A stretch of DNA of 64,000 bases, taken from positions 285,370 through 349,369 of the IMG/VR virus record IMGVR_UViG_3300034104_005687; one strand, given 5' to 3'. Of the stretch, positions 1 through 47,734 are shown piece by piece. The first letter of the stretch is position 1, and every line of letters starts with the position of its first letter. The translations under genes and the position numbers were made by a program. Below the pieces are notes generated by a model that had not been told where the DNA came from, did no database searches, and saw nothing but the letters and a program-made list of their open reading frames with translations.

Positions 1-1
1 C

Positions 2-793: not shown

Positions 794-876
794 TTGATTT
801 TTGTTTCAAAACCACTAGAAAAATTTTGTCAGGCCGTGTATAATCTGTAAATATTAGCACATTTTACGGAGATACC

Positions 877-1779
877 ATGGCAGACATTCAACCCACAACC
901 ACCCCACCTAGCAACACTGATCCCGCTCAAGTACAGATTCAAGTTGATCTAGATTACTTGCGCACTACTCGTGTTCATATCTGCATGCCATGCTACGGCG
1001 GCATGATGACTGAACAAACATTCATGAGCTTTATCAAATGGGGCAATACTTGTCGCCAATTGGGCATTGACTGGACTGTGGAAACCATGACCAATGAAAG
1101 CTTAATCAGTCGTGCACGAAACACACTCACAGCCAAGTTCTTGAACACACCCGAAAGCACTCACTTGATGTTTATCGACGCAGACATTGGCTGGGAACCC
1201 TGGCACCTGTTGGTCATGATCAATGCTCGCAAAGACGTGATCGGCGGCTTGTACCCCATGAAGAGTTTGCCTGTGAAATGGTGCGTCAACGGCATCCCGG
1301 GCAAAGAAGAAGGCACACCCGAACAACCACACTTGGTAGAAGTCAGCAAAACTGGCACAGGTTTCTTGTTGATCAAGCGCGATGTGTTTGAAAAGCTGAA
1401 TCAGCACCCTGCTACTCGTCCGTTCAACAACGACATTGGCTTGCCCGAAGAACTCAATCCTTACATGAAAACCTACTTTGACACAGCAGTGCGTGAAAAT
1501 CGTTACTACTCCGAAGACTGGACATTCTGTGAAAACTGGCGTGATCTAGGCGGGGAAGTGTACGTGGACAAACGTGTGCTGTTGCGTCACGTGGGCACCT
1601 ATGTGTTTGACGGTCAAACACAAGACAAACTGTATCAGGACCTTGCTGCTCTGGTCAAAGGTCCCACACATCAGATTCCTAGCCAGTTGCCGCCTGCGGC
1701 TACAGAGGCTGCACCTGCTGCAGAGCCTGAAGTGTTTGCATCTAGCCAAACCCCCGAAACAACTTCTACAGCTCCGTAA
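877..1779 (+). CDS. GT-A fold glycosyltransferase-like protein
   Basis: ARN..T..FL, FIDADIGW (DxD), GTGFLLIKR, SEDWTFC; GGAG RBS. Confidence 0.7.
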   Translation: MADIQPTTTPPSNTDPAQVQIQVDLDYLRTTRVHICMPCYGGMMTEQTFMSFIKWGNTCRQLGIDWTVETMTNESLISRARNTLTAKFLNTPESTHLMFIDADIGWEPWHLLVMINARKDVIGGLYPMKSLPVKWCVNGIPGKEEGTPEQPHLVEVSKTGTGFLLIKRDVFEKLNQHPATRPFNNDIGLPEELNPYMKTYFDTAVRENRYYSEDWTFCENWRDLGGEVYVDKRVLLRHVGTYVFDGQTQDKLYQDLAALVKGPTHQIPSQLPPAATEAAPAAEPEVFASSQTPETTSTAP

Positions 1780-1782
1780 CGG

Positions 1783-1788
1783 TAAATA
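1783..1788 (+). promoter_or_regulatory. T4-like late promoter core TAAATA (representative of many copies)
   Basis: TAAATA/TAAGTA recurs 4-8 nt before many ATGs, e.g. 8084, 15420, 31254, 40321, 57252. Confidence 0.65.
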
Positions 1789-1793
1789 CACTC

Positions 1794-4700
1794 ATGAACC
1801 TCCATGAGTTAGATTCCTACAACCTTGCAGATGCAGTAAAATTCCACAATCGCCTTAACCCGCGGTTGTGGGACAAAACTGAACATCTGTTGCCCGAAGT
1901 ACACAACAAACTGCTGGAAATAGCAGCCGATTTTCAAGAATTTTTGGGTGTGCCTGATCTAGACGTAGTGGATGTCACAGTGTCAGGATCCAATGCAGCC
2001 TACAGTTATACCCCACACAGTGACATTGACCTGCATCTTGTGGTGCAAATGCCAGAGCAAAACAGCGAAGTATTTCAAGAACTTTTCAACGCCAAAAAAT
2101 ATCAGTACAACGATGAACACGACATACGCATAGGGGGTGCTGATGTTGAACTCTATGTTCAACCTGCGGATCAAAAACATCATAGTCTAGGAATCTACAG
2201 TGTCAAAAACAATGACTGGGTCCAGGTACCACGCAGACGCAAAATAGAACTAGACGACCAGTGCGTGGCTCATAAAACTGAAGATCTGGCAGCCAGGATT
2301 GATCAAGCTGTGGCATCCGGCAGCGAAGAAACCATGCAGCGTTTGTGGGACAAAATTAAGACCATGCGTCAGACTGGGCTAGAGCAAGCCGGCGAGTTTG
2401 GCTGCGATAACTTGGTATTCAAAATGCTGCGTCGTTCTGGACACATCGAACGTTTAACGCAAGCCAAGACACAGGCTCATGATCGTGAGCTCAGTCTCAC
2501 AGAAAAGAAAAAACGCAAGAAGGCCAAAAAGAAATTTACCTATGGTGCGTTTGGTGGCTGGTTCTATCCAGGCTACAACTTTGGCGCAGGCGAAACCGGT
2601 GATGCTGGTGGCGGAGACGGCGGTGGAGAAAGTGTACGCGAAGTTGATTCAGGCATTGCACAAGGCAGCGCCATTGGTGACGCTGGTGCACAAAGCACAT
2701 GGGACGGGGTAAGTCCTGACACTGACGAATATCTCAGTGAAGAAGCCGAAGCCGAAAGCATTGTGCGTGATTTCATTAGAGACACTGCTCGCCGACTGAA
2801 CATTCAGAAACTACCGCGTGTGCGACTACACAATGATGACAGCTGGAGCGAAAATGCCGGCAGCTTTGGCAGATACGTACCTGAAACACACGAACTACAT
2901 GTGAACATGGCCGATCGCCACATCATGGACATATTGCGTACCACTGCACACGAATTGGCACATTGTAGACAGCACGAACTGTCGCCGTTGCCTGCTGATG
3001 CTGGCAACACTGGCAGTCGTTGGGAAAATCAAGCACATGCCACAGCTGGTGTGATCATGCGTGATTATGCTGATGCACATCCAGAAATGTTTGACAAATC
3101 TGCTGTAACTGAAAGCTCAGGTTACATTCCCACTGACGCAGAAAAGAACGATCCACGCTTTGTGATGGCCTTGAGTCCAGATGTTCGTCCAGGCGCAACA
3201 GGCAAGAATGCCAACAAGATGGCGTTGAGGACCAATGCACAAGGTCAGCCACAATTGGCCAAGACCAATGGCCTAGTAGAAAGCCTGCGTCGAGAGTTTG
3301 CTCTCCTAGAGGATGAATTTCTAGGCGAAATCAAAATGACCAGCAAGAATCTGCGAGCTGAAGCCGCCAAGACTGGTGCTATAGCTGGCATGGAATTTGA
3401 AATGATTGTGCCCAACACTGAAGGCAACGATGACGGTGACTTGGAACCCGACTATGACGCAGACCAACGCTGCCGTAGCATAGATGATGCTGTGGAGTTT
3501 TTCTATGACGGCGACTACAATGGCCGTAGAGATGTTGAAAACCTACGTGCAAGAATGAACAACGATTTCCAGGAATGGCGTGATGATAAAATTGGCAATG
3601 ATTGGGATACGGATGGGGATGATTATGTGCGTGAGTGGGTTGCCAACAATGTAGACGAATCAGAATGGAACAACAATGAAGATGATCCTGAAGCTTCGCG
3701 TGAAGAAAAATTAGACAACTTTGCTGCTAATGTTTACAATGATCCCGGCAGTAATTACCATCAACAAGCATTTGATGAGTTCCGAGAAGAAAATCAAGAC
3801 TCATATGACGAAAGTGACTGGTTAGACGCTGAAGACCTAGATCGCATGAGCGGTGTTGAAAACGCCTATGATATTTCTTGGCCGCACTGGACCAGCGGTG
3901 GCGGCGGTGGCGAAGCCAGTATTGAAGATGTAGCACAAGAGTTTGAAAATGCCATAGGCCGTGACGTTCGAGCCAGTGGCAGCTATCATTCAGGACGAGT
4001 ACAAAGACCCAGCCCTACACAACAACACTATGTGGTCGAGCCCGATGGCAGTTTGGAGCCGGATGATACCAATGATCAAGGCCTGGAGTTTGTAAGTCCG
4101 CCCCTGCCCATTGACGATATACTAAGTGACTTGAACAAAGTCAAGGCCTGGGCCAAAGAATATGGCTGCTATACCAACGACTCAACAGGCTTGCACATCA
4201 ACATCTCAGTGCCCAACTACAGCAGAGAAAACTTGGACTTTGTAAAGTTAGCATTGTTAATGGGCGACGAGTATATCCTGGACTTGTTTGGTCGTGTTGG
4301 CAATACCTACGCTAAGTCAGCCATGAAGCTGGTCAAGGAAAAAGTACGTGAAAATCCAGATGCAGCAAAACAGTTGCTGGACAAGATGAAGGGTAACTTG
4401 GATGCACTTGCTACCAAGGCCATCCACTCAGGTATTACCAGCAAGTACACCAGCATCAACACCAAGGACGGACACATTGAATTCCGCTCACCTGGTGGTG
4501 ACTGGCTGGATGACAACTTTGACAAGATTGAAAACACCCTGTTACGATTCACAGTGGCCATGAGTGCGGCACTGAATCCGGATGCTTATCGTCAAGAGTA
4601 TCAAAAGAAACTTTACAAATTGTTGACTGCGGACCAAAAGGATTCAGACACAATCAAGTATTTTGCACAATATGCTGCTGGTGAGCTACCCAAGGCTGCC

Positions 4701-6020
4701 TTGCGTAGTTTTGTTAAGCAAGCACAACTAGAGCGCAAGGTAAAACGCGGCGAAACAATCAATCAAAAAATGTGGTGGAGCGTTACCAATCCCCCGCAAA
4801 GTTCTGCCGGTATAGAAGTTGTTGCTACCTCTAAAGAAGAAGCCATTGCCCAAGCCCTGGGACCAGATGGCTATCCTGGCTGGGCCAACACACGACAATC
4901 AGTTGTGGCCAAGCCTTTGCGTCCATTTGAAGACACCAGTTTGGACAAACCTTTTGTATGGAAAGTTCAAGGCACTGATTCTCCATATCAAAGACAAGGT
5001 ATAGAAGTTGTTGCTTTTAGTGAGCTCGAAGCAATGCAAAAAGCCAGACGACGATGGAATTTAAACATAGGTACAACCCCAGAACAAGAATTCTTTAGAA
5101 CCAACCGTTGGATTGCTACCACTGTTCGTCCTGCTGAAGAACCTGAACAAGATCAAGACAGTGCAACAACTGGCAACTGGGGAGCTTATGTAACGGTGCT
5201 TGATCGGTTTGCAGAATTCAACGACCAAGGTACCACCCGTACTAGGAGATTCAGAGACCAGGCAGCAGCTGAGTCCTGGATACAGAATTATAATATAAGG
5301 TACCCTAGAAATGATCTTGAATTGACTGCTCGAGAGCTTGAACCTTCTGAACAAGCGCCGCAGTCTGGCCGTGCTGCCACAAGCCCAACAGGACAGTGGA
5401 AAATGGTTGATGGTTTAAATCGTGAAGTATATCGTTTCCGTCCTGCAGAGAATACTAGAGCCAAAGCCAATGAGTTAGCCTCACTATGGGCACGGGAAAA
5501 CAACTTTGATGGCAATTATCAAGTTGAACCTGCGGAAGATACTGCACAAACAGATACGAACCCACTAACACCAACAGGCTCTGGACCCTGGGAAGTAGCC
5601 AGCAGAAGCAACAATCAAGTTTATTACAACCCACCAAGCAGTAATCCTATTGAAGCAGAGTCACAATCAAGAACGTGGTTAAGACAAAACGATCACAACG
5701 AATCAGACTTTGAAGTACGAACTCGAGAAGGTGTTGGTGGCACAGACACAGCACAAGGTGGTATCATTGATATTGAACCAGATATATCACAATACAATGC
5801 ACCACAAACACTGACCCGCCCTGGGCAAGATCAGCAGGTGTTTACAGGCCAATGGAAAGTAACACTCGATGGCGAAGAGATTCATCGCTTTGGCGGCATT
5901 GGTAACAATCAAATGGATGCAAATCGTGTTGGCCGTGAATGGGCACGTAATCAAATACGTCAAGGATTATTATATCCTGCGGGCGATATCGAAGTCTTTC
6001 CAGTAATGGGAAATGCCTAA
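1794..6020 (+). CDS. Polyvalent protein: Pol-beta-type nucleotidyltransferase + HExxH metallopeptidase-like domain + amidoligase + C-terminal repeats
   Basis: GSNAAY..SDIDLHL; HELAH; GMEFE..EPDGSL..GLEFVSPP..TGLHINIS..IEFRSPG. Confidence 0.8.
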   Translation: MNLHELDSYNLADAVKFHNRLNPRLWDKTEHLLPEVHNKLLEIAADFQEFLGVPDLDVVDVTVSGSNAAYSYTPHSDIDLHLVVQMPEQNSEVFQELFNAKKYQYNDEHDIRIGGADVELYVQPADQKHHSLGIYSVKNNDWVQVPRRRKIELDDQCVAHKTEDLAARIDQAVASGSEETMQRLWDKIKTMRQTGLEQAGEFGCDNLVFKMLRRSGHIERLTQAKTQAHDRELSLTEKKKRKKAKKKFTYGAFGGWFYPGYNFGAGETGDAGGGDGGGESVREVDSGIAQGSAIGDAGAQSTWDGVSPDTDEYLSEEAEAESIVRDFIRDTARRLNIQKLPRVRLHNDDSWSENAGSFGRYVPETHELHVNMADRHIMDILRTTAHELAHCRQHELSPLPADAGNTGSRWENQAHATAGVIMRDYADAHPEMFDKSAVTESSGYIPTDAEKNDPRFVMALSPDVRPGATGKNANKMALRTNAQGQPQLAKTNGLVESLRREFALLEDEFLGEIKMTSKNLRAEAAKTGAIAGMEFEMIVPNTEGNDDGDLEPDYDADQRCRSIDDAVEFFYDGDYNGRRDVENLRARMNNDFQEWRDDKIGNDWDTDGDDYVREWVANNVDESEWNNNEDDPEASREEKLDNFAANVYNDPGSNYHQQAFDEFREENQDSYDESDWLDAEDLDRMSGVENAYDISWPHWTSGGGGGEASIEDVAQEFENAIGRDVRASGSYHSGRVQRPSPTQQHYVVEPDGSLEPDDTNDQGLEFVSPPLPIDDILSDLNKVKAWAKEYGCYTNDSTGLHINISVPNYSRENLDFVKLALLMGDEYILDLFGRVGNTYAKSAMKLVKEKVRENPDAAKQLLDKMKGNLDALATKAIHSGITSKYTSINTKDGHIEFRSPGGDWLDDNFDKIENTLLRFTVAMSAALNPDAYRQEYQKKLYKLLTADQKDSDTIKYFAQYAAGELPKAALRSFVKQAQLERKVKRGETINQKMWWSVTNPPQSSAGIEVVATSKEEAIAQALGPDGYPGWANTRQSVVAKPLRPFEDTSLDKPFVWKVQGTDSPYQRQGIEVVAFSELEAMQKARRRWNLNIGTTPEQEFFRTNRWIATTVRPAEEPEQDQDSATTGNWGAYVTVLDRFAEFNDQGTTRTRRFRDQAAAESWIQNYNIRYPRNDLELTARELEPSEQAPQSGRAATSPTGQWKMVDGLNREVYRFRPAENTRAKANELASLWARENNFDGNYQVEPAEDTAQTDTNPLTPTGSGPWEVASRSNNQVYYNPPSSNPIEAESQSRTWLRQNDHNESDFEVRTREGVGGTDTAQGGIIDIEPDISQYNAPQTLTRPGQDQQVFTGQWKVTLDGEEIHRFGGIGNNQMDANRVGREWARNQIRQGLLYPAGDIEVFPVMGNA

Positions 6021-6562
6021 TGCGAGCTAATGAGTTTGTTGTTGAAGCACACGTTCCACCTATACGTGATCAGATTCGTGCTGACGTGAAAAAGAATGGT
6101 CCTGGTGAATATTTTGTGCGTGTAACTGCTGTAGACCAACTGGGATTTAGTGCCAGGCAAAAGTTTGGTCGATCGCCCGACATGGATGATCCCAACTTTG
6201 ATGTAGACTACATTGGTGCAGGCCGAGGACGTCCTGCACTTTGGTTCTACCCAGTTAACGAATATCTCAAAAACAAAGACTTGTACGCAACAGAAAATCC
6301 TTATGTTTGGCTAGTTAAACTAAAAGACACAGCTTGGCTACAACCTGCTCGTCGTGGTGATTCAGGTGTGGCTAATCCGCCGCAGGGTAAACAACGTGTG
6401 GGTATTATGCGTATGAGTAATCCTCCGGCTGCTATATTCTTCCAGCCAGGATTTGATGTTGTAGGACGTTACTATGACTATGCAGGACAACACAAGCGTC
6501 ACGGCGAAGTCAAGGGTCGTCCTGATCCTAGCTGGTTTGATCGTGTTAGAGGTCAATCATGA
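6020..6562 (+). CDS. Hypothetical protein with capsid-targeting-like N-terminus MRANEFVVE
   Basis: TAATG coupling; N-terminal motif shared with neighbours. Confidence 0.75.
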   Translation: MRANEFVVEAHVPPIRDQIRADVKKNGPGEYFVRVTAVDQLGFSARQKFGRSPDMDDPNFDVDYIGAGRGRPALWFYPVNEYLKNKDLYATENPYVWLVKLKDTAWLQPARRGDSGVANPPQGKQRVGIMRMSNPPAAIFFQPGFDVVGRYYDYAGQHKRHGEVKGRPDPSWFDRVRGQS

Positions 6563-7041
6563 GAGCACAAGAGTTTGTAGGCGAAAAAGTTTCTCCAGAA
6601 ACTGCACAAGACGGTTTTCTTGATCAGCAGCTGGTCAACAACGGAGAATGGACAATCAAAGCCACGGGCGATACACGACGCTATGGTGACACAGTTGCCA
6701 ATGTGTTGCATGTAAAGGTGTTTGATACCAACACCAATGAAGAACTGGCCTGGGTCGATTTTCTTGTAAAAACTCGTAGAGAAGATGGAGAGCGATACAT
6801 GGAGTCAGCATACACTTATGTAAATCCTCGATACCGCGGCAAGGGACTGGCCAAGTTAATGTATCAGTATGCCAATAGCTTGGGCAACGACATTCAACCA
6901 AGTCAAATGCAAACTGACATGGGCAAAGGTATGTGGAAAGGACTCAACAAGGCTGTGAAACAACCTCCTTTGCTGCCTACTGTGTCTGTGCCCGAGAAAC
7001 CGCCCAGTGTGTGGCAGCGTTTGCGAAAGGCCGTGGTATGA
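6559..7041 (+). CDS. GNAT acetyltransferase, N-terminus MRAQEFVGE
   Basis: YVNPRYRGKGLAKLMY acetyl-CoA motif A; ATGA overlap. Confidence 0.8.
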   Translation: MRAQEFVGEKVSPETAQDGFLDQQLVNNGEWTIKATGDTRRYGDTVANVLHVKVFDTNTNEELAWVDFLVKTRREDGERYMESAYTYVNPRYRGKGLAKLMYQYANSLGNDIQPSQMQTDMGKGMWKGLNKAVKQPPLLPTVSVPEKPPSVWQRLRKAVV

Positions 7042-7586
7042 GAGCAAATGAATTTACACAACCACGGGCTGCTGGCTGTATAATAGTAGCTGAGGACACA
7101 GGTCGTTGGTGTTTACAGCAACGCAGTGACACAGTGAGTGATCCTGGCCTGTGGTCAACCTGGGGTGGCGGCTGTGAACTAGGAGAAACACTGGAACAAT
7201 GTGTGCGTAGAGAGCTGGCAGAAGAAGGTGGATATGTAGGCCCACTCCAGTTGGAACCACTCAGCAGCAACAGTCAGTATGCCACCTTTATTGGTCGTGT
7301 GCCACATGAATTTGAACCCAAAATCAATCGTGAATCAAAAGACTGGTGCTGGTGTGAGTCAGATCAACTGCCTGAACCCATGCATCCAGGACTTGCACAA
7401 GCGTTGAGTGAAAACTTTGCTGACGGCAAAGTAAAAGGAAAAAGCAGACCTGGGCGTGTAAAACGTGCAGGTGCCAGCTGCAATGGAAGTGTAACAGATC
7501 TAAGAGCAAGAGCCAAACGTGCATCAGGAGAAAGAGCCCGTATGTACCACTGGTGTGCCAACATGAAATCAGGACGTAAAAAATAA
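7038..7586 (+). CDS. NUDIX hydrolase with basic Cys-containing C-terminal module, N-terminus MRANEF
   Basis: Nudix box GGGCELGETLEQCVRRELAEEGG; start moved to the ATGA overlap at 7038. Confidence 0.85.
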   Translation: MRANEFTQPRAAGCIIVAEDTGRWCLQQRSDTVSDPGLWSTWGGGCELGETLEQCVRRELAEEGGYVGPLQLEPLSSNSQYATFIGRVPHEFEPKINRESKDWCWCESDQLPEPMHPGLAQALSENFADGKVKGKSRPGRVKRAGASCNGSVTDLRARAKRASGERARMYHWCANMKSGRKK

Positions 7587-7624
7587 GAGGCGGTCTCCTG
7601 TAACTTAAACTTATTTCAAAAACA

Positions 7625-8075
7625 AACAGCACAAGGTTGGCGGGCCGAATATAATACCGCTGGTGAATCCGCTCTGATGTGTGGCGGTAGCCAATTCTGT
7701 CCGCTGTTAACAGGCTTCTGTTCTCTACCCCTGTGCCGCAGGGATGCCCAGAGAAAACGTCTGCCCTGTGGCAGTAGCGTTAGAACAGTCGTACGGGTTG
7801 AGCGTAGCGCAAGCTAGCTTATTGTCAGATACTGTCATAGATCCAATTGACACCGAGGGATCTTTAAAAGTCGTAGCAGGTAGGGTAAGGTACAGAGCCC
7901 AGAACAGTAGACAACACAAATACCTGCTGTCATAAGTGTGGCTGAGCAACTCAGCGAATGTCTTGGCGCCCTGTTTCAGGGTGTCGTATGGCGTCACAAT
8001 CTAGCGAAATATCTCTTGTGTATTTGTATAAACAAAGCGAGCTGACAAGCGAAGCTTAGGATTGCGTAGCAATCC
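7625..8075 (+). ncRNA. Putative large structured non-coding element (RNA or ssDNA)
   Basis: About 510-bp gap in a gene-dense region with many nested inverted repeats; strand uncertain. Confidence 0.5.
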
Positions 8076-8097
8076 GATCAGACTAAATACAAATACT

Positions 8098-9228
8098 ATG
8101 CTATTCAACGAACTCTTTAACTCTAGCCCTGAACCCCTTGCTGAGGGTGTATTGGATAACCCTGGGCAAGAACACAGCCCGGTTGCGTCTGCTATTATTC
8201 GTCGTATCTTGCTACAGCGTACAGACTTATTGAGCAAGTACGGTCCTGAGCGAGTGGGTGCAGCAGTTGACGATGTTGCTGACTTTGTGGGTGACACGGA
8301 CGAAATTGGCAGTAGCGATGTATCCGGTTGGGTTCGCCAAGTTGAACAGATGTTGGGCAACATGACAGAAGCTGGATACAAGCGTGATGCGTATCAAAGA
8401 GATTACGACAATAGTGTTGCAGGCATGAGCAAACGTGACTCTTACGCCTACAGTCAAGACGGTGGTGGCAACGATGAACGCCACGATCTAGATCCCACTG
8501 AGTGGTACATTGTCAAAGATGGCAAAATGTTCAAAGCAACTGTGTATCCTACCCAAGTACAGTCAGCAATGTCACAGGGCTTTAGTCCCAGCAGAGAAGA
8601 AGCCAAAGCCAGAGCTGACCAGCAAGGTGTGGCGGAAGGCTCAGATTTTTTTGCAGGTAGCAAATTTGCCGACGAAGATGGCAATACATTTAGTGTAGAA
8701 AAAATAATAGCCTTTGCCAAAAAAAATCCAAAATATTTTCATAAAGATTTTCCATTATCAAAAATAAAACATGATCTTTCATGGTGGCAAGGAAATAAAG
8801 AAAGAATGATGAATGCTGATACAAGTTTTCCACTGTTAGTAATTCAAAATGATGATGGACATCTTGGTGTTGCTGATGGGCTTAATCGCATGAAAAAAGC
8901 AGTTGATGTTGAGAAGAAAACAACTATTGATGTTTATCTAGTTCCAAAAAAAGATATTATGAAGTTCTCTGAAAAGCAAGGTGTGGCGGAAGGTGATATC
9001 GGTCAGTTAGAAAAAGATATTGCTGCTGCACCAGTTGAGCCTATTGCCAACATGGAAGGCTCCAACGAAAAGATTGGCAATATGGATGCTGATGCGTTTG
9101 ATTCTGCCATGGCACGCCTTAAAAAGCTAGCAGGTGCAGGGCCAATGAAAACTGTGTGGGATCCTACCAAACGTGTTTACCGCAACATGCCCACAGCAGT
9201 TCAACCTCCTCAACAGCCCAAAAAATGA
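8098..9228 (+). CDS. Modular polyprotein with repeat-flanked ParB/Srx-like cassette
   Basis: ATG follows TAAATA at 8084; modules separated by LAE/MTE/VAE/NME; PLLV..DGLNR motif. Confidence 0.8.
   Translation: MLFNELFNSSPEPLAEGVLDNPGQEHSPVASAIIRRILLQRTDLLSKYGPERVGAAVDDVADFVGDTDEIGSSDVSGWVRQVEQMLGNMTEAGYKRDAYQRDYDNSVAGMSKRDSYAYSQDGGGNDERHDLDPTEWYIVKDGKMFKATVYPTQVQSAMSQGFSPSREEAKARADQQGVAEGSDFFAGSKFADEDGNTFSVEKIIAFAKKNPKYFHKDFPLSKIKHDLSWWQGNKERMMNADTSFPLLVIQNDDGHLGVADGLNRMKKAVDVEKKTTIDVYLVPKKDIMKFSEKQGVAEGDIGQLEKDIAAAPVEPIANMEGSNEKIGNMDADAFDSAMARLKKLAGAGPMKTVWDPTKRVYRNMPTAVQPPQQPKK
8621..8639 (+). repeat. 19-bp repeat copy 3
   Basis: Exact copy. Confidence 0.97.
8975..8993 (+). repeat. 19-bp repeat copy 4
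   Basis: Exact copy 354 bp (118 codons) after copy 3. Confidence 0.97.
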
Positions 9229-9491
9229 GAGCCAGCGAGTTCATTGGCACCGTTGCCAAACGTAATGCTCGCGTAGGCTCCAGACATCAACGTGGGCACA
9301 CTCCGCTGCCCAGATATCGTTACAGCAATGATCAAAAATTGGATGAACTCAGTTTCCTGGGTTCTGAATGCACCAAGGACTGTTCAGGACATCGTGCTGG
9401 CTACGACTGGTACAAGAAACGTGGCTATGAACCAGCCAGCTGGAGCAACAGCTTCAACCGTGGTGCTGCCTTGGCTGCTGCTGGCAAATAA
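9225..9491 (+). CDS. Small basic protein, N-terminus MRASEF, with CTKDCSGHRAGY module
   Basis: ATGA overlap; shared N-terminal motif. Confidence 0.7.
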   Translation: MRASEFIGTVAKRNARVGSRHQRGHTPLPRYRYSNDQKLDELSFLGSECTKDCSGHRAGYDWYKKRGYEPASWSNSFNRGAALAAAGK

Positions 9492-9524
9492 CAACTCACA
9501 ATCACAGCTAGCATACATACGTGC

Positions 9525-10364
9525 ATGATTGATATTTGCACTGTTGTATTCCAACAAGAAATTCCTGTGCTGAAATTACAGGCTCAAAGCATAGATTTGT
9601 ACTGCCACGACATTGGCGTAAACTGCATTTATGTTGTGGTCAACGATCACGACTCAGTTGTGCAACTGATTGATCCTGCATGGTGGGGCAGTATGAGCCA
9701 TTTGGTTCGAGTCATACCCAGATCTGTGTTTTCAACTGACTTTGTGGACAATGGATGGGTCAGTCAGCAAGTACTCAAACTACTGGTGCCCGCCATGAGC
9801 TACAATCAGTGTACCATGGTATTGGATGCCAAAACTGTATTTGTTCAACCTGTGACATTGTCACAACTGTTTGATTCCACAGGCAAGATTGCCACAGGAA
9901 CCCTGGAGCTGTATCCAGTGTTTGATGCTGCTAGACAAATTGTCAATGCCACATACAACATTGACCTACAGCATCAAATTGGACCCGGCGGCGTGCCGTT
10001 TGTGTTCAACAACAACACAGTGAGAATGATGATTGCAGATACCACTGCACTGACTCAGCAGAACTTCCCTGAATGGTTTCAATCGCAAGGCATGCTCACA
10101 GAGTTTGTGCTGTATTCTGGTTATGTGCAATACCGACATGGTTCATTGACCAGTTTGTACACTACAGATCAACCATCAATACGGCCGGTAAACATGTGTC
10201 ACAGTGAGGTTGCATTAGCGGATCGTATACTAGATCATATGCAGCAGGCCACCACAGTGAGCATACACCGAAACGCCTGGCCGCAGCTCACTGTGAGTCA
10301 GCAACAACAGTATCGTGATTTGCTGATCGACAAAGGAATTACTCAAGCATGGGCACTAAAATAA
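9525..10364 (+). CDS. Glycosyltransferase-like protein (DUF6492-like)
   Basis: GWVSQQVLKL, VLDAK, TEFVLY; paralog of 12729-13745. Confidence 0.6.
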   Translation: MIDICTVVFQQEIPVLKLQAQSIDLYCHDIGVNCIYVVVNDHDSVVQLIDPAWWGSMSHLVRVIPRSVFSTDFVDNGWVSQQVLKLLVPAMSYNQCTMVLDAKTVFVQPVTLSQLFDSTGKIATGTLELYPVFDAARQIVNATYNIDLQHQIGPGGVPFVFNNNTVRMMIADTTALTQQNFPEWFQSQGMLTEFVLYSGYVQYRHGSLTSLYTTDQPSIRPVNMCHSEVALADRILDHMQQATTVSIHRNAWPQLTVSQQQQYRDLLIDKGITQAWALK

Positions 10365-10873
10365 ACGCACTGTGCATGGTTGCACACCCTGATGACTGTG
10401 TGATTTTTGCCTATAGTTATATTCACAATCATCCAGAAATGAATTGGACCATTGGATACCTGACCTATACTGAACAAGACCCACGAGGTGCAGAGCTTGC
10501 TGCTTTTTGGCGCCGCCGAGGTATTGATACTGTGTTCTTGGGATTTGAAGATCATTGGCACGACAATGAACAAAAACAATTCACTAGATGGACAGAGGAA
10601 CGTGCCGAACGAGCCTGTTGGGAGTTGGCAAAGAATTTTGATCTGGTGTTGACACATGATGAATTTGGCGACTACGGACACATACATCATGTGTTGGTAC
10701 ACAATTCAGTGCAATGGCATCCGCGTCTGGTCACATTTGCGCCACCAGGCCAAGGTACCACATACACTGTGCCTGCAGGTACATACAACCTCAATGAGTT
10801 GCCCATGCACGGTGAAATTGTGCAAGGCTTTCATCACAGTGAACACCGCAACAGTTACAAGGAAACAAAATGA
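10349..10873 (+). CDS. PIG-L/LmbE-family deacetylase
   Basis: VAHPDD and THDEFGDYGHIHH motifs. Confidence 0.8.
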   Translation: MGTKINALCMVAHPDDCVIFAYSYIHNHPEMNWTIGYLTYTEQDPRGAELAAFWRRRGIDTVFLGFEDHWHDNEQKQFTRWTEERAERACWELAKNFDLVLTHDEFGDYGHIHHVLVHNSVQWHPRLVTFAPPGQGTTYTVPAGTYNLNELPMHGEIVQGFHHSEHRNSYKETK

Positions 10874-11682
10874 AATTAATGGTAGCAGGATGTAGTTATT
10901 CAGCAGTGAGTCAGCGCATGCCTGGCACCAGCTGGAGTGAGTTGCTGGCTCAACAACTAGGCTGGGACCTGACGAATCTAGCACGACAGGGTTGCAGCAA
11001 CGGGGGCATACGTGTGCAGATTGATGAAATACTGAGGCAACGTCCTGACTTTGCTGTGATCACTCCCACGTTCTGGGACAGAATGGAAATACCAGCTTCG
11101 GCAGCACCATTTGATTGGAAAAAAAGCACAGGTGGATGGAATCCAGAAATACAGCGTCACTTGCAAGATCGCACATTAAAAAATGGCTATAATCGTGACG
11201 ATGGCATCAACAACGTCAACTACGGCAACAACAACTACAACATGATCTGCGAGACTATCTACACCTTAGCAGAAAACTTTGATCATCCTTATCGTTCAGG
11301 GCTGATCAGCAAAACATCTCAGACTGCTGTACGACACTACATAGATGGTATATATGATTCAGAATGGAAACGGCAACAAGACGAATGGATTGTTAAGTCG
11401 GGCATTTTTGAACTGCATCATGCTGGCATTGACTTTTTGTTTGTGCCTGTGTTGTTGTGGCCCTTTGATCCTGCGTTGGGGGCAACTCAATGGCGCAAAT
11501 CAATCAGTACTGCTGTGCCTGACCGCAACGTGATGTTTGACGAACGAGAATCAATATTGCCGTTGTGTGGCAACAATCCGTTTGAAGGAGAAGATCCTGG
11601 TTACCATTCGGGTGCCCGGGGCCAACAACTCATTGCTGACAACTACTATCGCAGAATCACACAAGATTTTGGATTAGCGTAA
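10870..11682 (+). CDS. SGNH-hydrolase-like protein
   Basis: AGCSYS, NLARQGCSN, C-terminal DPGYH. Confidence 0.55.
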   Translation: MKLMVAGCSYSAVSQRMPGTSWSELLAQQLGWDLTNLARQGCSNGGIRVQIDEILRQRPDFAVITPTFWDRMEIPASAAPFDWKKSTGGWNPEIQRHLQDRTLKNGYNRDDGINNVNYGNNNYNMICETIYTLAENFDHPYRSGLISKTSQTAVRHYIDGIYDSEWKRQQDEWIVKSGIFELHHAGIDFLFVPVLLWPFDPALGATQWRKSISTAVPDRNVMFDERESILPLCGNNPFEGEDPGYHSGARGQQLIADNYYRRITQDFGLA

Positions 11683-12732
11683 ATGTGGCTCAATCATGCG
11701 CTGCATTTCGGAGTATTTTTCTTGACGAAACTCATATAGCCTGTGATGATTGTGGTCCAGGATGGATCGAGCTTGCAGTAGTATTTTCTGATGGTCTTGT
11801 TGACTCAACCATTTTACTTGCTCAAATGCAGCTTGCCAACGATCAATGTCACGTTCAATGCTGTCATAGCTTTCGTCCAGTATGGAATCAAAAGTCTTGA
11901 ATCCAAAGGATCGAAGTTTTTTCAACCAGTGTGCTACGCCAAAGTGCACAAACAGTCTACGAGCATGTAGGCATTTGCCAATCTTTTCTGCCATGAGATA
12001 GCAGTCTCCAGATCCCAGTGTTTCTACCAAGATGCTGTAGTATGTGCGATTGTATATTTCCCAGGGTTCGATGCTGCTGATAGAGTTGTCAAGATGTTCT
12101 CTTACCTCCCATGCAGGATCTAGATTTGGACTCACATAAGGCCACACAATTTTTTGATCAGGAAATTGTTGTTGTACTTTGTCAGTGGTTTCGGTGATGT
12201 TGCCACCTACAAAAATGTCTCGGTAGGTAGCAATACTGTGATTCAGCAGTCCTGATTTTTCAAGACTCAGCATCACATAGTCTCGATGTTCTCTGCGTGT
12301 GCCACACAAACAGTCAAACAAATAAGGACGTGACAGTGGAAAATCATCACGTGGTGGGTTCCACTGTAGGAAAGTAAAACTCCACCATGGACGATACACT
12401 GTACGATGAGTCAAAGTTTCAGAAGCATACAGTCCTGCTACACTCAACAGCCAGTTGTTGGCATCGGTGGTATCAATCCAGTTGATCAACTCTGTCTGCG
12501 ATCTAAACTCAATATCAGTAAACAACACCAGGTCAAACTGACTCAATTGTAGATTTTCAAATTCTGGTTTGTAAGAAAATTCTGTGGGTCGATTAAAGTA
12601 CACTGGCAATACTGCAATCTTGGTAGGCTGTGCCAGTGCAGTGGCTAGATCCACTATCTGTGGATAATCAAAACCCCAATCTATGGCTTGGTAGCCCGGG
12701 CTATAAATTTTGAGTTGCGAGAAATCTGTCAT
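11674..12732 (-). CDS. Putative GT-B-like phage protein (ET..EK..GF.TF..DESYD family)
   Basis: Motif shared with 27532, 39352 and 42995 ORFs. Confidence 0.6.
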   Translation of the reverse strand: MTDFSQLKIYSPGYQAIDWGFDYPQIVDLATALAQPTKIAVLPVYFNRPTEFSYKPEFENLQLSQFDLVLFTDIEFRSQTELINWIDTTDANNWLLSVAGLYASETLTHRTVYRPWWSFTFLQWNPPRDDFPLSRPYLFDCLCGTRREHRDYVMLSLEKSGLLNHSIATYRDIFVGGNITETTDKVQQQFPDQKIVWPYVSPNLDPAWEVREHLDNSISSIEPWEIYNRTYYSILVETLGSGDCYLMAEKIGKCLHARRLFVHFGVAHWLKKLRSFGFKTFDSILDESYDSIERDIDRWQAAFEQVKWLSQQDHQKILLQARSILDHNHHRLYEFRQEKYSEMQRMIEPHLR

Positions 12733-13745
12733 GGTTTCCAGGCCTTGTAAGTGTTACCAAACTTTTGAGTTAGGTGTTGGTCGTCTGCAGCACTGCGTCC
12801 TAACCAATGTTGATCAGGCTGTCCAGGGCATATTTCTTCCATAATTGAAGTCTTGATCACACCCGTAGCTTCAGAAAGCCTTTGCCGTATCTGATCCATC
12901 CACTGATCAAAGTTCTCAATTTCTTTTTTATCCCAATCAAATCGCACACTGCGGTTAAGATCGGGCACAGCATCACAGATTGCTGTGTGATAGTCAGGAT
13001 CAAACCCGCCAATCTTGGTCATATCATCATACATGTACCTGTGCTGTGGCTCTGTAGAGATCTCTCTGCGACTCATGGTCCAGTTGCCCAGTAATTCGTA
13101 CTCAGACAACCAGCGTATGAGTTCACCTTTGCCCCAGGGTGGCACAGTGGCTTCTCCTGGACAGTTGTCCACAATGGCGTCTAACCATTTGATGTGATGA
13201 CGTTGTTCCAGGAACAGTCGTAGATCAGTGATGTCTTGTTTGAGTACAGGCACATATTCAGAAATAAAGCAGTGAGGTGTTTGTCTTTCAATTCCCAAAG
13301 CGTTTTTGATAGTTTCGTAGTAACCCCAGCTGTGTCGTTGATTTTCCAGTACCATGTAATTCAACTTGCCGTTCTTGAACGGTTCATAATCGCGAATCAA
13401 GATACAGTCAGGGTCGTTCATGACCATGAGATCATAATCTAGGTAATCCAAAAAAGCCATCTTGATGGCCTGTTGTCGCAGCCACCAACCCCGATAGTCA
13501 TCTTCAAACACCCAGTTGTTGACTTCGGGATACAGTCTGTAGATTTCTGAGTCGGGCGCATAATCAAAGTTAGTGGTATCAATGCCGTATTTTTCAAATA
13601 CGGGCCATAGTTCTTCTTTGGGCACAGGACTGGCAATACAGGTTCTGTCTACACCAATCAGGTGCCGGCTAAACTCTGATTGCAACGCCATCACAGCGTG
13701 CGGCACACGATAACGTGCAAGGTATACAATTTTTGCTGATGTCAT
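12729..13745 (-). CDS. Glycosyltransferase-like protein (DUF6492-like)
   Basis: GWWLRQQAIK, DPD, SEYELLG. Confidence 0.6.
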   Translation of the reverse strand: MTSAKIVYLARYRVPHAVMALQSEFSRHLIGVDRTCIASPVPKEELWPVFEKYGIDTTNFDYAPDSEIYRLYPEVNNWVFEDDYRGWWLRQQAIKMAFLDYLDYDLMVMNDPDCILIRDYEPFKNGKLNYMVLENQRHSWGYYETIKNALGIERQTPHCFISEYVPVLKQDITDLRLFLEQRHHIKWLDAIVDNCPGEATVPPWGKGELIRWLSEYELLGNWTMSRREISTEPQHRYMYDDMTKIGGFDPDYHTAICDAVPDLNRSVRFDWDKKEIENFDQWMDQIRQRLSEATGVIKTSIMEEICPGQPDQHWLGRSAADDQHLTQKFGNTYKAWKP

Positions 13746-14341
13746 AATATTTCTTTGAATTGATCACGATGCCACAACGACATGTTGTTGGCATCACAGT
13801 CTGTGACCTGATCCAGCGGGACAGGAAAGTTCCAGGGTGGCAACTGCCAGTTGACACCAGATGATGGAAAATGTTCTGCAGAGTATTCAATATCAACGTT
13901 TTGACCAATGTATGTTTGGTGTGTGATAAGAATCCAAGGAACACTGCTGTTGTACCAGTTGAGCCATAATTGACGACAATCATGATTGTTGAGATGTATA
14001 GCAACATCTCTCACAAACAGCAAATCAACTTTGGGTATGGGATCTGTGGTCACATCGTGTAACACAACATCAAGCTCAGGATGGCGATGCCAAGCATCTG
14101 CAACCATGGCCAAACTGATATCGCCCCCTTGGTACTGCACAAACTGTCCCACTCTCTTCATCCAATTGCAGTCGTTACACCCAGCATCAAAAATACTGGA
14201 TATATTATGTTTCTTAAAAAGTTCAATAATGTTGTCACGTAAGCGTTGTGTACCGGGCACACTACTGGCCCCTGTTAAATTGCCAGCAGTATGAGTTGGT
14301 GAATACAACTTTGAAAATATTTTTTGTAAGGTTAGATTCAT
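13742..14341 (-). CDS. Class I SAM-dependent methyltransferase
   Basis: IFDAGCND, GGDIS, DLLFVRDVAIHL. Confidence 0.75.
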   Translation of the reverse strand: MNLTLQKIFSKLYSPTHTAGNLTGASSVPGTQRLRDNIIELFKKHNISSIFDAGCNDCNWMKRVGQFVQYQGGDISLAMVADAWHRHPELDVVLHDVTTDPIPKVDLLFVRDVAIHLNNHDCRQLWLNWYNSSVPWILITHQTYIGQNVDIEYSAEHFPSSGVNWQLPPWNFPVPLDQVTDCDANNMSLWHRDQFKEIL

Positions 14342-15390
14342 ATCTTGTTGCAGGTTTTAACGCACTGGTATGTTCTACCTTGTGCTATGCTATTTAATTG
14401 CCATGTTTGTTCCACACGATCAAACCATTCAAGACATTGAGTCAATGGATATTCCAGTGCGTTGTTTTGATGTATCAGCGTGGCCAGTTCTTGATTACCA
14501 GGATGATTCATTTGTCCCGGATAGAATCCCAAAAAGCAACAAGGGTACACAGATCCGTTGGCGGCCACATAGATTTCTCGGTTGCGTTTGTGAATACACT
14601 GTATGTCAAGATCGGGCGTGTCCTTGGCTTCTTTGACAGTTTTGGAATCGTACCAAGTAACATGATTTTCTAACAAGGGTTTGATATCTCTAGGAGTCCC
14701 GTTGAATCCAGGATCGTTACCAATTTGATGACTAAACTCTCCAGTGCGTGTAAATGCAGGGCCGTTGTCTCTGCCGTCGTATATGTTTTCAAACTTGGCA
14801 AACCCAAGCTGTTGTGCCATGTTTCTACAGGCCTGTTCTTGATGACGATTATGTTCAAATGGAACAAATCTCCATACTGCACGACCGCCTGCTTGGATAA
14901 AGGCAGAGGCATGTTCAATGATTCTATGCCAGTCAGTGTCTTGACGATATAAAGAATGAGTATCTGCTAGTCCGTCAATTGCCCAACCAATTTCTACTCC
15001 TGACATAGCCAATCGAGCCCACCATTCAGAGTTGCGCACACTGCCATTGGTATTGATTGCCACAGGCACGCCGTGGTCAACTAGATACTTGACTATTTCT
15101 GCGCCGTCTCGCGCTGATCCAAAATCCCCAAGATTACCGTTGAAAGAAAATCCGTGCGAGAATCCATATGACACAGGAACACGCCCGTTGACAGGAGGAT
15201 CAGGCTGCATGATACTGGCCAATATTTCAGGAGTAAAAATTTGTTGAAATTGAACTAAGTTGAGTTCACACACAGGATAACCTGAATTAAAATCCATGCC
15301 TCTATAGTTGCGCATGCACATAGGACAACGAGCATTGCATCTTGTGGTTAACTCAACGTGGACTCTACGTATCTGATTTAGTTTTAACAT
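14338..15390 (-). CDS. Radical SAM protein with SPASM/twitch domain
   Basis: CNARCPMC, NTNG, GSVYPCC. Confidence 0.9.
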   Translation of the reverse strand: MLKLNQIRRVHVELTTRCNARCPMCMRNYRGMDFNSGYPVCELNLVQFQQIFTPEILASIMQPDPPVNGRVPVSYGFSHGFSFNGNLGDFGSARDGAEIVKYLVDHGVPVAINTNGSVRNSEWWARLAMSGVEIGWAIDGLADTHSLYRQDTDWHRIIEHASAFIQAGGRAVWRFVPFEHNRHQEQACRNMAQQLGFAKFENIYDGRDNGPAFTRTGEFSHQIGNDPGFNGTPRDIKPLLENHVTWYDSKTVKEAKDTPDLDIQCIHKRNREIYVAANGSVYPCCFLGFYPGQMNHPGNQELATLIHQNNALEYPLTQCLEWFDRVEQTWQLNSIAQGRTYQCVKTCNKI

Positions 15391-15397
15391 TGTAGAA

Positions 15398-15425
15398 TAT
15401 TTATAGGCGTAGTTTTTGATAAATA
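15398..15425. promoter_or_regulatory. Divergent late promoters (TATAAATA minus, TAAATA plus)
   Basis: tatttata 15398-15405 and taaata 15420-15425 between divergent ATGs. Confidence 0.65.
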
Positions 15426-15430
15426 TTCTT

Positions 15431-15727
15431 ATGAAAAGTCAGTTTGTCAAATTGGTGTTCGATGTATACTGTCGTTGGAGTGACACTCCTCCACGATATC
15501 GTTGCTATGTTGAAGACGAGTTGTTTGCTGAACGAACATGGACATGGCAAGGTGTTCATCTTGAAGAAGCATTTCAGATACAGGCACCGCCGGGTCGATA
15601 CAAAATAAGATATGAGTTGTTGGATACTGAAAAAGCAGAACTGCGTCTGCGCAACGGCAGAGTAGAAGTGGGATCAGCTGTGTTGCACAAAGGTGATGTG
15701 TTGGAGATAATCAATGAAAATGCGTGA
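15431..15727 (+). CDS. Hypothetical protein
   Basis: ATG 5 nt after TAAATA. Confidence 0.7.
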   Translation: MKSQFVKLVFDVYCRWSDTPPRYRCYVEDELFAERTWTWQGVHLEEAFQIQAPPGRYKIRYELLDTEKAELRLRNGRVEVGSAVLHKGDVLEIINENA

Positions 15728-15911
15728 AATTATGGAAACGGCCAGTGGTGGTGCCAGTGCAGGTGTTACATCAGCTGGCAGTATGGCTCCGGCTATAGGC
15801 AACATGGGCATGTTGTCAAGAACAGGCTCAGGCCTACTGACAGGTAAATATACATCAGAGCCGACGCCTAACACGCCGGCCAAATACAAAAGGAAAAAAC
15901 GTGCTAGTTGA
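15714..15911 (+). CDS. Small protein with targeting-like N-terminus MKMREIME
   Basis: GGAG RBS; Gly/Ala-rich with basic tail. Confidence 0.65.
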   Translation: MKMREIMETASGGASAGVTSAGSMAPAIGNMGMLSRTGSGLLTGKYTSEPTPNTPAKYKRKKRAS

Positions 15912-16344
15912 TGATTTAAAAACACTGTTGGCCACCCAATATGCTTATGTGCTCAAGGCACAGTTGTTTCATTGGAACGTTGAAGGCCCAGACTTTGCCC
16001 AACTACACAAATTTTTTGGCAAGATATACGAAGAAGTGTACGAAAATTCTATAGATCAAACCGCAGAATTTATTCGCATACTTGACGACTACACCCCAGG
16101 CAGCTTTGAACGTTTTGCTGAACTCAGTTTGATTCCTGGTCAAACCAAAATCCCGCGTGCTCGACTCATGATTGAAGAACTGTTCAATGACTCAGAGCAA
16201 TTGATTGCATTGTTGAATCAGTGTTTTGATGTGTCTGAAGCCGAAGATCAACAAGGCATTTGTGATTTCCTTGCTGGTCGTATTGATGCCATGGGCAAGC
16301 ACCGTTGGATGCTGAGAAGTTTCTTGAAAGACCAACGAGCATGA
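15901..16344 (+). CDS. dps: Dps/ferritin-like protein
   Basis: HWNVEGPDFAQLHKFF, D..AE.IR, K..WML. Confidence 0.9.
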   Translation: MLVDDLKTLLATQYAYVLKAQLFHWNVEGPDFAQLHKFFGKIYEEVYENSIDQTAEFIRILDDYTPGSFERFAELSLIPGQTKIPRARLMIEELFNDSEQLIALLNQCFDVSEAEDQQGICDFLAGRIDAMGKHRWMLRSFLKDQRA

Positions 16345-17090
16345 CCGTAGATATTCGCACCATATTGCAACGCATTACAGCCATTGAAGAAGGTGCAACC
16401 ACACCAGCTGTGGTCAAGCACGGGCTAAATCCTCAACAGAAGTCAGTGCCGCAGTTGCCTGCATTGTTCAAGCCTAGATCTATCAAAGCATTGGGTGCAA
16501 AGACTGATCCGCAGCATCCCATGAAAGGGTATGCTGTGGGTGCAGATGAAAGTGCAGAGTCCAAGAAGTCTGCCTTGGAAGAAGCCATGGCCCAGGTAGA
16601 AGAAGACATGCTGAGCAAAGTCAAAGCTGATCTCAACAGCTACCTAGACAGATTAGAAAACAAATTGGCCGGTGATGATGGCCAGCGCGACAAAGGCACA
16701 CCTGACTTGGATCGTCTAGAAAAGAAAACTCGCATCGACCGAGACCTAATAGACAAGGCTGTGAATGCTATTGAAAAAGGCCAGGCTGAAAGCGACCAAG
16801 CAGTTGCAGAAGATCCCACACAACAAGACTCTATGTCTGCGGCGCCACCTGTGCCTGTTGAAGATCCTGTGTTGCCTGAATCAGCAGGTCCTGTGTTCAC
16901 AGTGGAAATGAGTGACGGATCATGTTTAGAATGTTGGGGCGACGAAGGACGCGGTTTTGAAGTACGCAGACAAGGTCGTTCTATGCCTAGTCGTTTCCCC
17001 AAAGTTGATCATGCTAAGATGGCCATGGACCTGTTTAGGAATCAGTGGGAACGACAAGACCGTGGGCAGGATTACATAGAGGAACACTGA
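16341..17090 (+). CDS. Hypothetical acidic protein, possibly head-internal
   Basis: ATGA overlap; several hydrophobic-x-E junctions. Confidence 0.7.
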   Translation: MTVDIRTILQRITAIEEGATTPAVVKHGLNPQQKSVPQLPALFKPRSIKALGAKTDPQHPMKGYAVGADESAESKKSALEEAMAQVEEDMLSKVKADLNSYLDRLENKLAGDDGQRDKGTPDLDRLEKKTRIDRDLIDKAVNAIEKGQAESDQAVAEDPTQQDSMSAAPPVPVEDPVLPESAGPVFTVEMSDGSCLECWGDEGRGFEVRRQGRSMPSRFPKVDHAKMAMDLFRNQWERQDRGQDYIEEH

Positions 17091-17127
17091 AATACTGCCG
17101 ATGAAATATCAGTAGCAAACAAGAACA

Positions 17128-17210
17128 CCCTTAGGACCGCACTTGTTGCGAGGGCGCCCGGCTGCTGGGCGTGGTAATCCGATTCGCTACCGGAACCCAC
17201 TAAGTGAGCA
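17128..17210 (+). ncRNA. Putative structured RNA with pseudoknot
   Basis: Three stacked hairpins; loop TTCGCT complementary to downstream AGTGAG. Confidence 0.4.
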
Positions 17211-17228
17211 AATACCCTCAACAGAGGC

Positions 17229-17257
17229 TTGACTTCGGCCGCTGTTTCATTTATACT
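17229..17257 (+). promoter_or_regulatory. Sigma70-type promoter
   Basis: TTGACT-17-TATACT. Confidence 0.75.
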
Positions 17258-17280
17258 AGTGTTTTAAACAGGAGTATTGT

Positions 17281-17541: not shown

Positions 17542-17613
17542 ATATCTGTTTCAACAGCGAGTCGCTACCGTAAGCAGCATGAATCACGGCCTTCCGGCCA
17601 TAAACGGAGAACA

Positions 17614-47646: not shown

Positions 47647-47652
47647 TTTTTA

Positions 47653-47727: not shown

Positions 47728-47734
47728 CATAGTC

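Follow-up and report, generated by a model that had tools for sequence, protein, structure and literature searches.

A candidate T4-type targeting and cleavage leader shared by unrelated proteins of an uncultured lake-water jumbo phage

Results and Discussion

A common leader on unrelated proteins

The 64,000-nucleotide stretch analysed here (the window) is the final 64 kb, positions 285370-349369, of a 349,369-bp contig, IMG/VR virus record IMGVR_UViG_3300034104_005687, and contains a cluster of genes whose unrelated products begin with nearly the same short peptide. This N-terminal leader, M-R/K-A-x-E-F-(I/V/L)-x-E, is the subject of the present report. An initial annotation had listed seven such N-termini in the window and likened them to the capsid-targeting sequence (CTS) of phage T4, and all seven are found in the sequence where it had placed them. 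The strict leaders are those of the genes at 6020, 6559, 7038 and 9225, in each of which the start ATG overlaps the stop codon of the upstream gene (TAATG or ATGA). Coordinates are collected in Table 1; genes are denoted below by their first nucleotide, in the window or, where so stated, in the whole contig (the genome, prefix C1 in ranges).

Table 1. Features of the leader cluster and the prohead protease gene (window coordinates unless prefixed C1).
Feature	Coordinates	Strand	Leader or N-terminus	Remarks
1408-aa multidomain ('polyvalent'-type) protein	1794..6020	+	No N-terminal leader	Pfam, PHROG
Internal leader relic	3285..3329	+	LRREFALLEDEFLGE	Junction of two modules of the 1408-aa protein
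180-aa protein	6020..6562	+	Full leader MRANEFVVE (6020-6046)	ORF; conserved domain follows from AHVPPIRDQI
160-aa GNAT-like acetyltransferase	6559..7041	+	Full leader MRAQEFVGE (6559-6585)	
182-aa NUDIX hydrolase	7038..7586	+	Predicted targeting half only (MRANEF-TQP, 7038-7055)	Lacks the aliphatic-x-Glu site
376-aa protein	8098..9228	+	MLFNELF...	phrog_17560 match only
88-aa basic protein	9225..9491	+	Predicted targeting half (MRASEF-IGT)	Mature isoelectric point (pI) 9.9
65-aa small basic protein	15714..15911	+	Variant leader MKMREIME (Ile-Met-Glu site)	Mature pI 10.7
261-aa protein (249 aa if ATG at residue 13)	16305..17090	+	No leader	
Prohead protease gene	C1:84690-85328			

The 180-aa protein encoded at 6020 was modelled with AF2 (predicted local distance difference test (pLDDT) 77.8), and its leader is disordered in the model. 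Nearly all of the top Foldseek matches, and those of an independent VIA search, belong to the ADP-ribosyltransferase (ART) superfamily (ParT, the diphtheria toxin catalytic domain, MbcT, RES and PARPs), with weak scores (E at least 0.06, TM at most 0.34, Z 5-6.1). A catalytic H-Y-E or R-S-E motif could not be assigned, the sole invariant Glu being Glu9 of the leader. An ART-like fold, which did not feature in the initial annotation, is a reasonably likely prediction for this protein. The product of 6559 matches Pfam GNAT families at 17-19 bits, under the gathering cut-offs, and has an ESM Atlas feature score of 0.96 with 198 features in common with viral GNAT clusters; its orthologue in related locus L075 starts MRAKEFVSE. 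The product of 7038 scores 68.3 bits against Pfam NUDIX (cut-off 21.1) over a domain that begins at residue 9, and its Nudix box is intact (G-x5-E-x7-RELAEEGG, matching G-x5-E-x7-R-E-L-x-E-E-x-G), placing it in the NUDIX family. Its orthologue in L014 starts MRAREFTEP. The GNAT and NUDIX proteins of the initial annotation both carry the leader.

The NUDIX protein ends in a basic, Cys-containing tail module, and the same module is found directly behind leaders in L120 and L086. Small basic modules that contain Cys are shuffled among the leader proteins. Examples of such recombination behind leaders are seen at genome C1:131910-133760 and in leader proteins of L013, L086 and L120, and the recurring forms include KRSINCxNPKGFSQxAHC (a weak DUF3008 match), ...MYHWCANMKSGR and CTKDCSGHRAGY[DN]W. 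These modules may bind DNA or metal.

The leader is conserved at the peptide level within the genome

In the six frames of the genome M[RK]xxEF occurs six times; all six occurrences read MRAxEF and all stand at the first ATG of an ORF of at least 88 aa. Four are the strict leaders of the window; the remaining two head neighbouring genes in tandem, genome 134261 and 134629. Variant leaders are present at window 15714 and genome 275294. A short N-terminal peptide is thus common to unrelated proteins of one phage. At internal protein positions RAxEF was found twice in 105,792, and the looser pattern M[RK]xxE[FILMV] fits 9 of the 363 predicted N-termini compared with an internal rate of 0.2% (p = 7.5e-8). 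The last residues of the full leader have the form of a prohead-protease site, with Ile, Leu or Val at position 7, any residue at position 8 and Glu at position 9.

To score all N-termini of the genome a position-specific scoring matrix (PSSM) was trained on the leaders of loci that had been fetched via the protein body and not via the leader. Six N-termini formed a clear group (13.5-22 bits); genome 179793 (9.3 bits), genome 275638 (7.5 bits), window 9225 (6.9 bits) and window 15714 (3.3 bits) were intermediate, and the remaining N-termini constituted a noise floor at or below 2.7 bits. Given its score, the membership of 15714 rests on conservation of the motif in its orthologues (MKIHEIME and MRIREIME). 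Such a genome-wide motif scan had been suggested by the initial annotation, and it trims that annotation's list of seven to 6020, 6559, 7038, 9225 and 15714. The other two proposed members are at chance or noise level: MLFNELF (8098) scored 1.9 bits and MNLHEL (1794) fell outside the top 30. The former is also rejected because the conserved module of the 8098 protein sits within larger proteins of relatives. The MNLHEL start is matched from residue 1 by nucleotidyltransferase-like proteins that occur on their own in phages (residues 1-235 of the 1408-aa protein align in this way with proteins of cyanophages and Maribacter phages) and is therefore part of a domain and not a leader. The intermediate N-terminus at genome 275638 is that of a 336-aa DUF6321 protein (C1:275638-276648), which starts MKINQFVNE, a Gln5 variant of the leader, and directly follows the leader gene 275294.

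The leader codons vary among the copies (CGA/AGA, GCA/GCT/GCC, GAG/GAA, TTC/TTT) and the DNA upstream of them is unrelated, which points to selection and conservation at the level of the peptide. These features bear on the view that the common start is a nucleic-acid element, either an optimum for translation initiation (a downstream box) or a recombination cassette that moves gene starts. Such an element would account for the motif always lying at a start codon, often in an ATGA or TAATG overlap, and for the shuffling of modules between genes. It is difficult to reconcile with synonymous codons that vary freely, with a pattern that is free at position 8 and fixed at 5, 6, 7 and 9 at the amino-acid level, and with retention of the Glu site in fused proteins far from any start codon (see below). 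We therefore regard a nucleic-acid explanation as very improbable.

Spread of the leader in related uncultured phages

Searches with the 180-aa protein identified 16 IMG/VR loci in which many ORFs start M-[RK]-x-x-E-[FIL]-[ILV]-x-E on differing proteins, and in one of these loci nine leader ORFs follow one another consecutively. The exact MRAxEFITE DNA pattern is present in at least 120 IMG/VR stretches, whereas a reversed-order control of equal base content is found in none. Similarly, five near-complete genomes of 340-350 kb contain 26 leader matches versus one for the control. The S77 protease is encoded in all five of the large leader-bearing contigs that were tested. The 214 distinct leader proteins of the fetched loci fall into 35 unrelated clusters, the representatives of which include GH19 and SLT peptidoglycan hydrolases, NUDIX and GNAT proteins, an NT5C nucleotidase and DUF6267.

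The largest cluster includes the pair at genome 134261 and 134629 and has 2,227 metagenomic homologues, none informatively named. Among the best 120 of these, retrieved by similarity to the body of the 134629 protein, 119 keep MRA[RKQH][ED]F[IVL]xE, with position 8 variable. The fold model of this family (pLDDT 84, extended, with two helices) yielded neither a structural match nor a match in the Atlas. At C1:135058-137134 adjacent genes for proteins of 202 and 488 aa begin with 17 identical residues, MANPPPPYDNITGISRA, a second and different common N-terminus; the 488-aa protein contains YadA-head repeats and is probably a fibre protein.

The comparative data already contradict the simplest account of the window, in which the common start is functionless and arose by chance or by recent duplication of a single gene start within the genome. 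Although four strict copies do lie within 3.3 kb, the frequency of the motif at N-termini of the genome, its abundance in IMG/VR relative to the control, its presence on 35 unrelated clusters, its retention in almost every homologue retrieved by its body, and the different codon usage of the copies leave this account with practically no likelihood.

Gene fusion and gene splitting at the leader

Of the comparative evidence on the role of the leader, its fate in related loci when genes fuse or split is the most informative. The 1408-aa protein comprises a nucleotidyltransferase-like module (residues 1-493) and a second module (residues 507-1404) that contains Amidoligase_2 (709-902). Residues 507-1404 are separate, leader-bearing genes in L012, L017 and L005, with leaders that end ...DLFE or ...VITE before INMSP. 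Across L005-L017 the modules are separate or differently fused, in keeping with a polyvalent-type protein. The junction between the two modules in the window retains a relic of the leader, which holds Leu-Leu-Glu and Leu-Gly-Glu sites and precedes IKMTS. The relic aligns with the N-terminal leaders MRFNEVKKLIESEEDLFE, MRYQEIKIINEDEDLFE and MKYREILEQVITE of stand-alone homologues, which are likewise located ahead of the common I[NK]M[ST] start, and it may be an internal cleavage site. The initial annotation had counted this nucleotidyltransferase-amidoligase ORF among the leader bearers, which does not hold: the only leader sequence is the internal relic before the amidoligase module.

The 180-aa domain provides a second example. 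In most relatives it is free-standing with a leader, whereas in L006-L009 it follows a nucleotidyltransferase module as part of one in-frame fusion. At the fusion junction MRAxEF has been lost and Val-Glu-Glu or Val-Asn-Glu stands directly before the conserved AKVP, such that Glu9 is invariant in 13 of 13 orthologues, the fused forms included. In a third case, L011_6431, the bodies of genome 275294 and, behind it, of window 9225 (genome 294594) are joined under a single leader; here they are two genes, 19 kb apart, each with a leader of its own. A leader that each separate polypeptide needs, with a cleavage half that is kept at joints, fits a targeting sequence combined with a protease site; neither an N-degron nor a translation signal fits this behaviour. 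Fission of one larger protein of relatives was also considered as the origin of the 180-aa and 160-aa genes, and was rejected as the C-terminal extensions in L011 and L015 are unlike the 160-aa protein. PDB sequence searches with the 1408-aa, 180-aa and 261-aa proteins gave empty or insignificant results.

The phage encodes a T4-type head

The genome (45.7% G+C, CheckV completeness 97%) belongs to a jumbo phage of lake water whose head module is of the T4 type, and at least 24 metagenome runs on lake water, dated 2020-2024, contain the same DNA. The head genes are arranged as in T4, with the portal gene followed by those for a 72-aa protein, an acidic 286-aa protein, the protease, a coiled-coil scaffold and the capsid protein. 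The protease is a Peptidase_S77 member (gp21 family, PF03420, 80.5 bits) with 31% identity to T4 gp21, and the major capsid protein belongs to the Gp23 family (PF07068, 324 bits), with 36-37% identity to its T4 counterpart across two aligned segments. Both a gp21-family protease and a scaffolding core of the gp22/67/68 type are therefore encoded by the phage. A phage transfer-messenger RNA (tmRNA) at window 55779-56224, a permuted two-piece molecule of betaproteobacterial type with the tag peptide ANDSQFALAA (Rfam RF04321 112 bits, RF01850 91.6 bits; ARAGORN), hints at a betaproteobacterial host.

The N-termini of T4 head proteins offer a direct comparison. T4 gp23 is cut after Leu-Thr-Glu65, and in the capsid protein of the present phage Leu-Lys-Glu is found just ahead of the block homologous to mature gp23. 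T4 gp21, gp22 and gp24 begin MNEPQLLIE, MLKEQLIAE and MAKINELLRE, respectively, while the 286-aa core protein of this phage starts MNRFEQLIE and its capsid protein MSQELLE. The CTS carried by IPI, IPII and IPIII, internal proteins of T4, is MKTYQEFIAE (Mullaney and Black 1996; for reviews see PMC9026906 and PMC3012670). As a positive control, the pattern M-x4-E-[FLIM]-x-x-E was searched in the T4 genome (NC_000866) and finds ipII and ipIII (MKTYQEFIAE) and alt (MELITELFDE). In these comparisons MRAxEFITE and the T4 CTS have E-F-I-x-E in common, and MRAxEFITE conforms to the gp21 rule of Leu/Ile-x-Glu. In the same T4 record the 54-aa hypothetical protein gp61.1 (18966-19130, minus strand) starts MKTFKEFIKE, very close to the CTS of IPII and IPIII.

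The first ten residues of the T4 CTS suffice for loading (PMC9026906; also PMC3012670 and PMC5694885). Residues 4 and 7 are important in targeting, 8 and 10 in processing, and a mutant with Asp10 enters the head without being cut (PMC9026906). These mutational data agree with the two-part build of the present leader and with its two half forms, and predict that the NUDIX protein and the 88-aa protein, which have MRAxEF without the Glu9 site, would be loaded but not trimmed.

A probable targeting and cleavage leader for head-packaged proteins

Taken together, the sequence data indicate that M-R/K-A-x-E-F-(I/V/L)-x-E is probably the T4-type targeting and cleavage leader of this clade, borne by proteins that are packaged in the head and injected. 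In such a mechanism the MRAxEF half would dock a freshly synthesised protein onto the prohead's scaffolding core, and the aliphatic-x-Glu half would be cut after Glu9 by the gp21-family prohead protease. The mature cargo would stay in the head with the DNA and enter the host at infection. The cargo encoded in the window would be the putative ART-like protein (6020), the GNAT (6559) and NUDIX (7038) enzymes and the two small basic proteins (9225 and 15714), those at 7038 and 9225 entering the head untrimmed. Core binding, cleavage, packaging and injection, together with any role in host takeover or anti-defence, are what we infer from these comparisons. The proposal of the initial annotation that a T4-like CTS lies on unrelated enzymes accordingly fits all of the comparative tests that were run (protease, synteny, the EF-I/V-x-E core, the leader on peptidoglycan hydrolases of relatives, the leader pair in the sheath operon and the fusion junctions), with the membership list corrected as above.

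An alternative is that the leader is a recognition tag unconnected with the prohead, such as an N-degron for a phage or host AAA+ protease, a signal for localisation or an element bound by a phage chaperone, which times or places the enzymes in the infected cell. The tag is short, N-terminal, disordered and portable, as such a signal would be; NUDIX proteins, NT5C and nucleotidyltransferases could equally work in the producing cell, the window cluster lacks a clear late promoter, and a ClpP-like N-terminal motif at genome 219931 marks a putative ClpP-like gene. An N-degron, however, gives no reason for aliphatic-x-Glu to persist at internal fusion junctions. Nor does it account for the near identity to the T4 EFIxE core, the similar N-termini of the phage's own head-core and capsid proteins, the presence of the leader on GH19 and SLT wall hydrolases, and the conserved pair inside a tail and neck operon. 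We consider this alternative unlikely.

The operon in question is a co-directional, tightly packed array in which the 134261/134629 pair lies with tail sheath, tail tube and head-closure genes. It is headed by the late-promoter motif TATAAATA, 33 nt ahead of the sheath ATG, and the phage encodes a gp55-like sigma factor (E = 1e-6). This motif is intergenic in 11 of its 15 occurrences (p about 1e-9), and is not enriched overall (15 observed versus ~20 expected). An exact copy lies 7.7 kb upstream of the window cluster in the same gene array. The distribution of TATAAATA is weakly informative on the timing of the window cluster, and a scan for sigma-70 promoters and terminators in window 1-18000 was not usefully above shuffled sequences.

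Several observations weigh against a T4-type head-targeting leader. Two of the four strict members (7038 and 9225) consist of MRAxEF without the Glu9 site. Near the window cluster no exact copy of the late-promoter motif is present; there TATAAATA occurs only with one mismatch, at 846 and 8027. The N-terminal half of the leader, MRAx, differs from the MKTYQ of T4 and is one residue shorter, and nine residues cannot separate homology from convergence. Furthermore, the clade is uncultured: when 50,697 phage records were searched at the DNA and protein levels with the window cluster and two leader proteins, no cultured relative emerged, and one weak match was to a cyanophage. The nearest isolates by capsid protein (62-67% identity) are the jumbo phages Vibrio phage 2.275.O, PA5oct, XaC1 and Escherichia phage A4, which have no DNA or cargo genes in common with the genome. 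In these four phages the leader motif is not enriched over the reversed control, and the virion proteomes of these isolates are therefore not transferable to this phage. The sole leader match in PA5oct, whose record has notes on virion mass spectrometry (MS), is an unannotated, non-MS protein.

Relationship to known systems and significance

The tag mechanism is known in kind from T4. What is new is its probable occurrence in a jumbo clade that is distant and uncultured, together with the wide range of enzymes among the predicted cargo and the leader relics inside multidomain proteins. The two systems have in common a tag of about ten residues at the N-terminus of unrelated proteins, with an E-F-I-x-E core that ends in aliphatic-x-Glu, a head gene order of the gp20/67/68/21/22/23 type, an apparent division into a targeting half and a processing half, and cargo that is diverse, fast-evolving and partly small and basic. 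In contrast to the CTS of T4, the leader described here belongs to lake phages of ~340-350 kb that are far from the Tevenvirinae, much of its predicted cargo can be recognised as enzymes, multidomain proteins contain relics of the tag, and it is known from sequence alone.

T4 Alt is a head-packaged ADP-ribosyltransferase that is loaded via a short N-terminal propeptide and injected with the DNA. The 180-aa protein resembles Alt in its predicted ART-superfamily-like fold and in carrying a leader comparable with the Alt propeptide, MELITELFDE. It differs in having no sequence similarity to Alt, in its length (180 versus 682 aa) and in the weakness of its fold matches (Z 5-6). Polyvalent phage proteins have been proposed to be packaged and processed (Iyer et al. 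2017, PMC5512222). Like these, the 1408-aa ORF joins several effector-type domains, with modules that are separate or recombined in relatives, although processing in the present case would be by the prohead protease at leader-derived sites, and not by an embedded zincin-like peptidase. No signature domain of polyvalent proteins was detected in the 1408-aa protein, a weak Kinase-PolyVal match being found in a relative only. In the giant phages phiKZ and SPN3US a diverged gp21-like protease cleaves ejection and inner-body proteins of the head after Glu. Their propeptides, mostly of more than 100 residues and with an S/A/G-x-E site, are thought to target these proteins to the prohead (PMC5694885). 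The present phage is of another lineage, and its tag has nine residues with an aliphatic P3, as in T4.

A broader and more speculative proposal, which we consider doubtful, is that the leader is an address label defining the injected proteome of the whole uncultivated freshwater jumbo clade, that a cargo dominated by NAD+ and nucleotide enzymes arrives ready-made and disarms NAD+-depleting or nucleotide-signalling immunity ahead of the expression of any phage gene, and that the multidomain proteins are cut into active modules in the head at leader-derived sites. The cargo that prompts this reading comprises the ART-like, NUDIX and NT5C proteins and, in relatives, an NMNAT-like nucleotidyltransferase and HAD-like proteins.

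Proteins that travel with phage DNA are usually known only via virion proteomics of cultured phages. If the tag works as in T4, injected effectors could be read from sequence in a large, abundant and uncultured group. The ART-like, GNAT and NUDIX proteins, the wall hydrolases and many proteins of unknown function would then form a list of candidates for host takeover and anti-defence. The T4 targeting-and-processing signal would also prove to be ancient and shared by widely separated branches of the T4 superfamily, and the locus would provide a concrete model of 'polyvalent' proteins that are built from, and cut back into, tagged modules.

Neighbouring genes and other features of the contig

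The remaining genes of the cluster lack the leader. A Pfam search with the 376-aa protein (8098) was empty. The 261-aa protein (16305), annotated initially as a ParB/Srx-like ORF, had no match in Pfam, PHROG or PDB sequence searches, and its best Atlas score (0.83) was to unnamed viral clusters. A ParB/Srx domain was thus undetectable by any of the four methods, and the assignment is unsupported. No leader was found on the genes between 9525 and 15390 or on the Dps-like gene at 15901. The former comprise two DUF6492 proteins, a PIG-L deacetylase and a radical SAM protein, with an exact TATAAATA at 15405 heading the minus-strand part, and may constitute a sugar or DNA modification cluster. In many related loci the Dps/ferritin-like gene (15901-16344; Pfam Ferritin 66.7 bits) is conserved beside the gene for the small leader protein. 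A non-coding gap of ~476 nt (7587-8061) separates the NUDIX gene from the ORF that follows it and contains TATAAT and TATAAACA; an Rfam search of the gap returned no match.

Towards the end of the contig the window carries 24 tRNA genes (47572-63968), mostly in a dense array at 60.7-64 kb. The region 47869-59951 also encodes a series of host-like proteins: an AhpC/TSA peroxiredoxin (47869), a CMD/AhpD-like protein (49905), a TctC-type receptor (54890), a Gram-negative porin (56279), an LpxH-like metallophosphoesterase (57262), a GT2 glycosyltransferase (58165) and a PstS-like periplasmic binding protein (58947).

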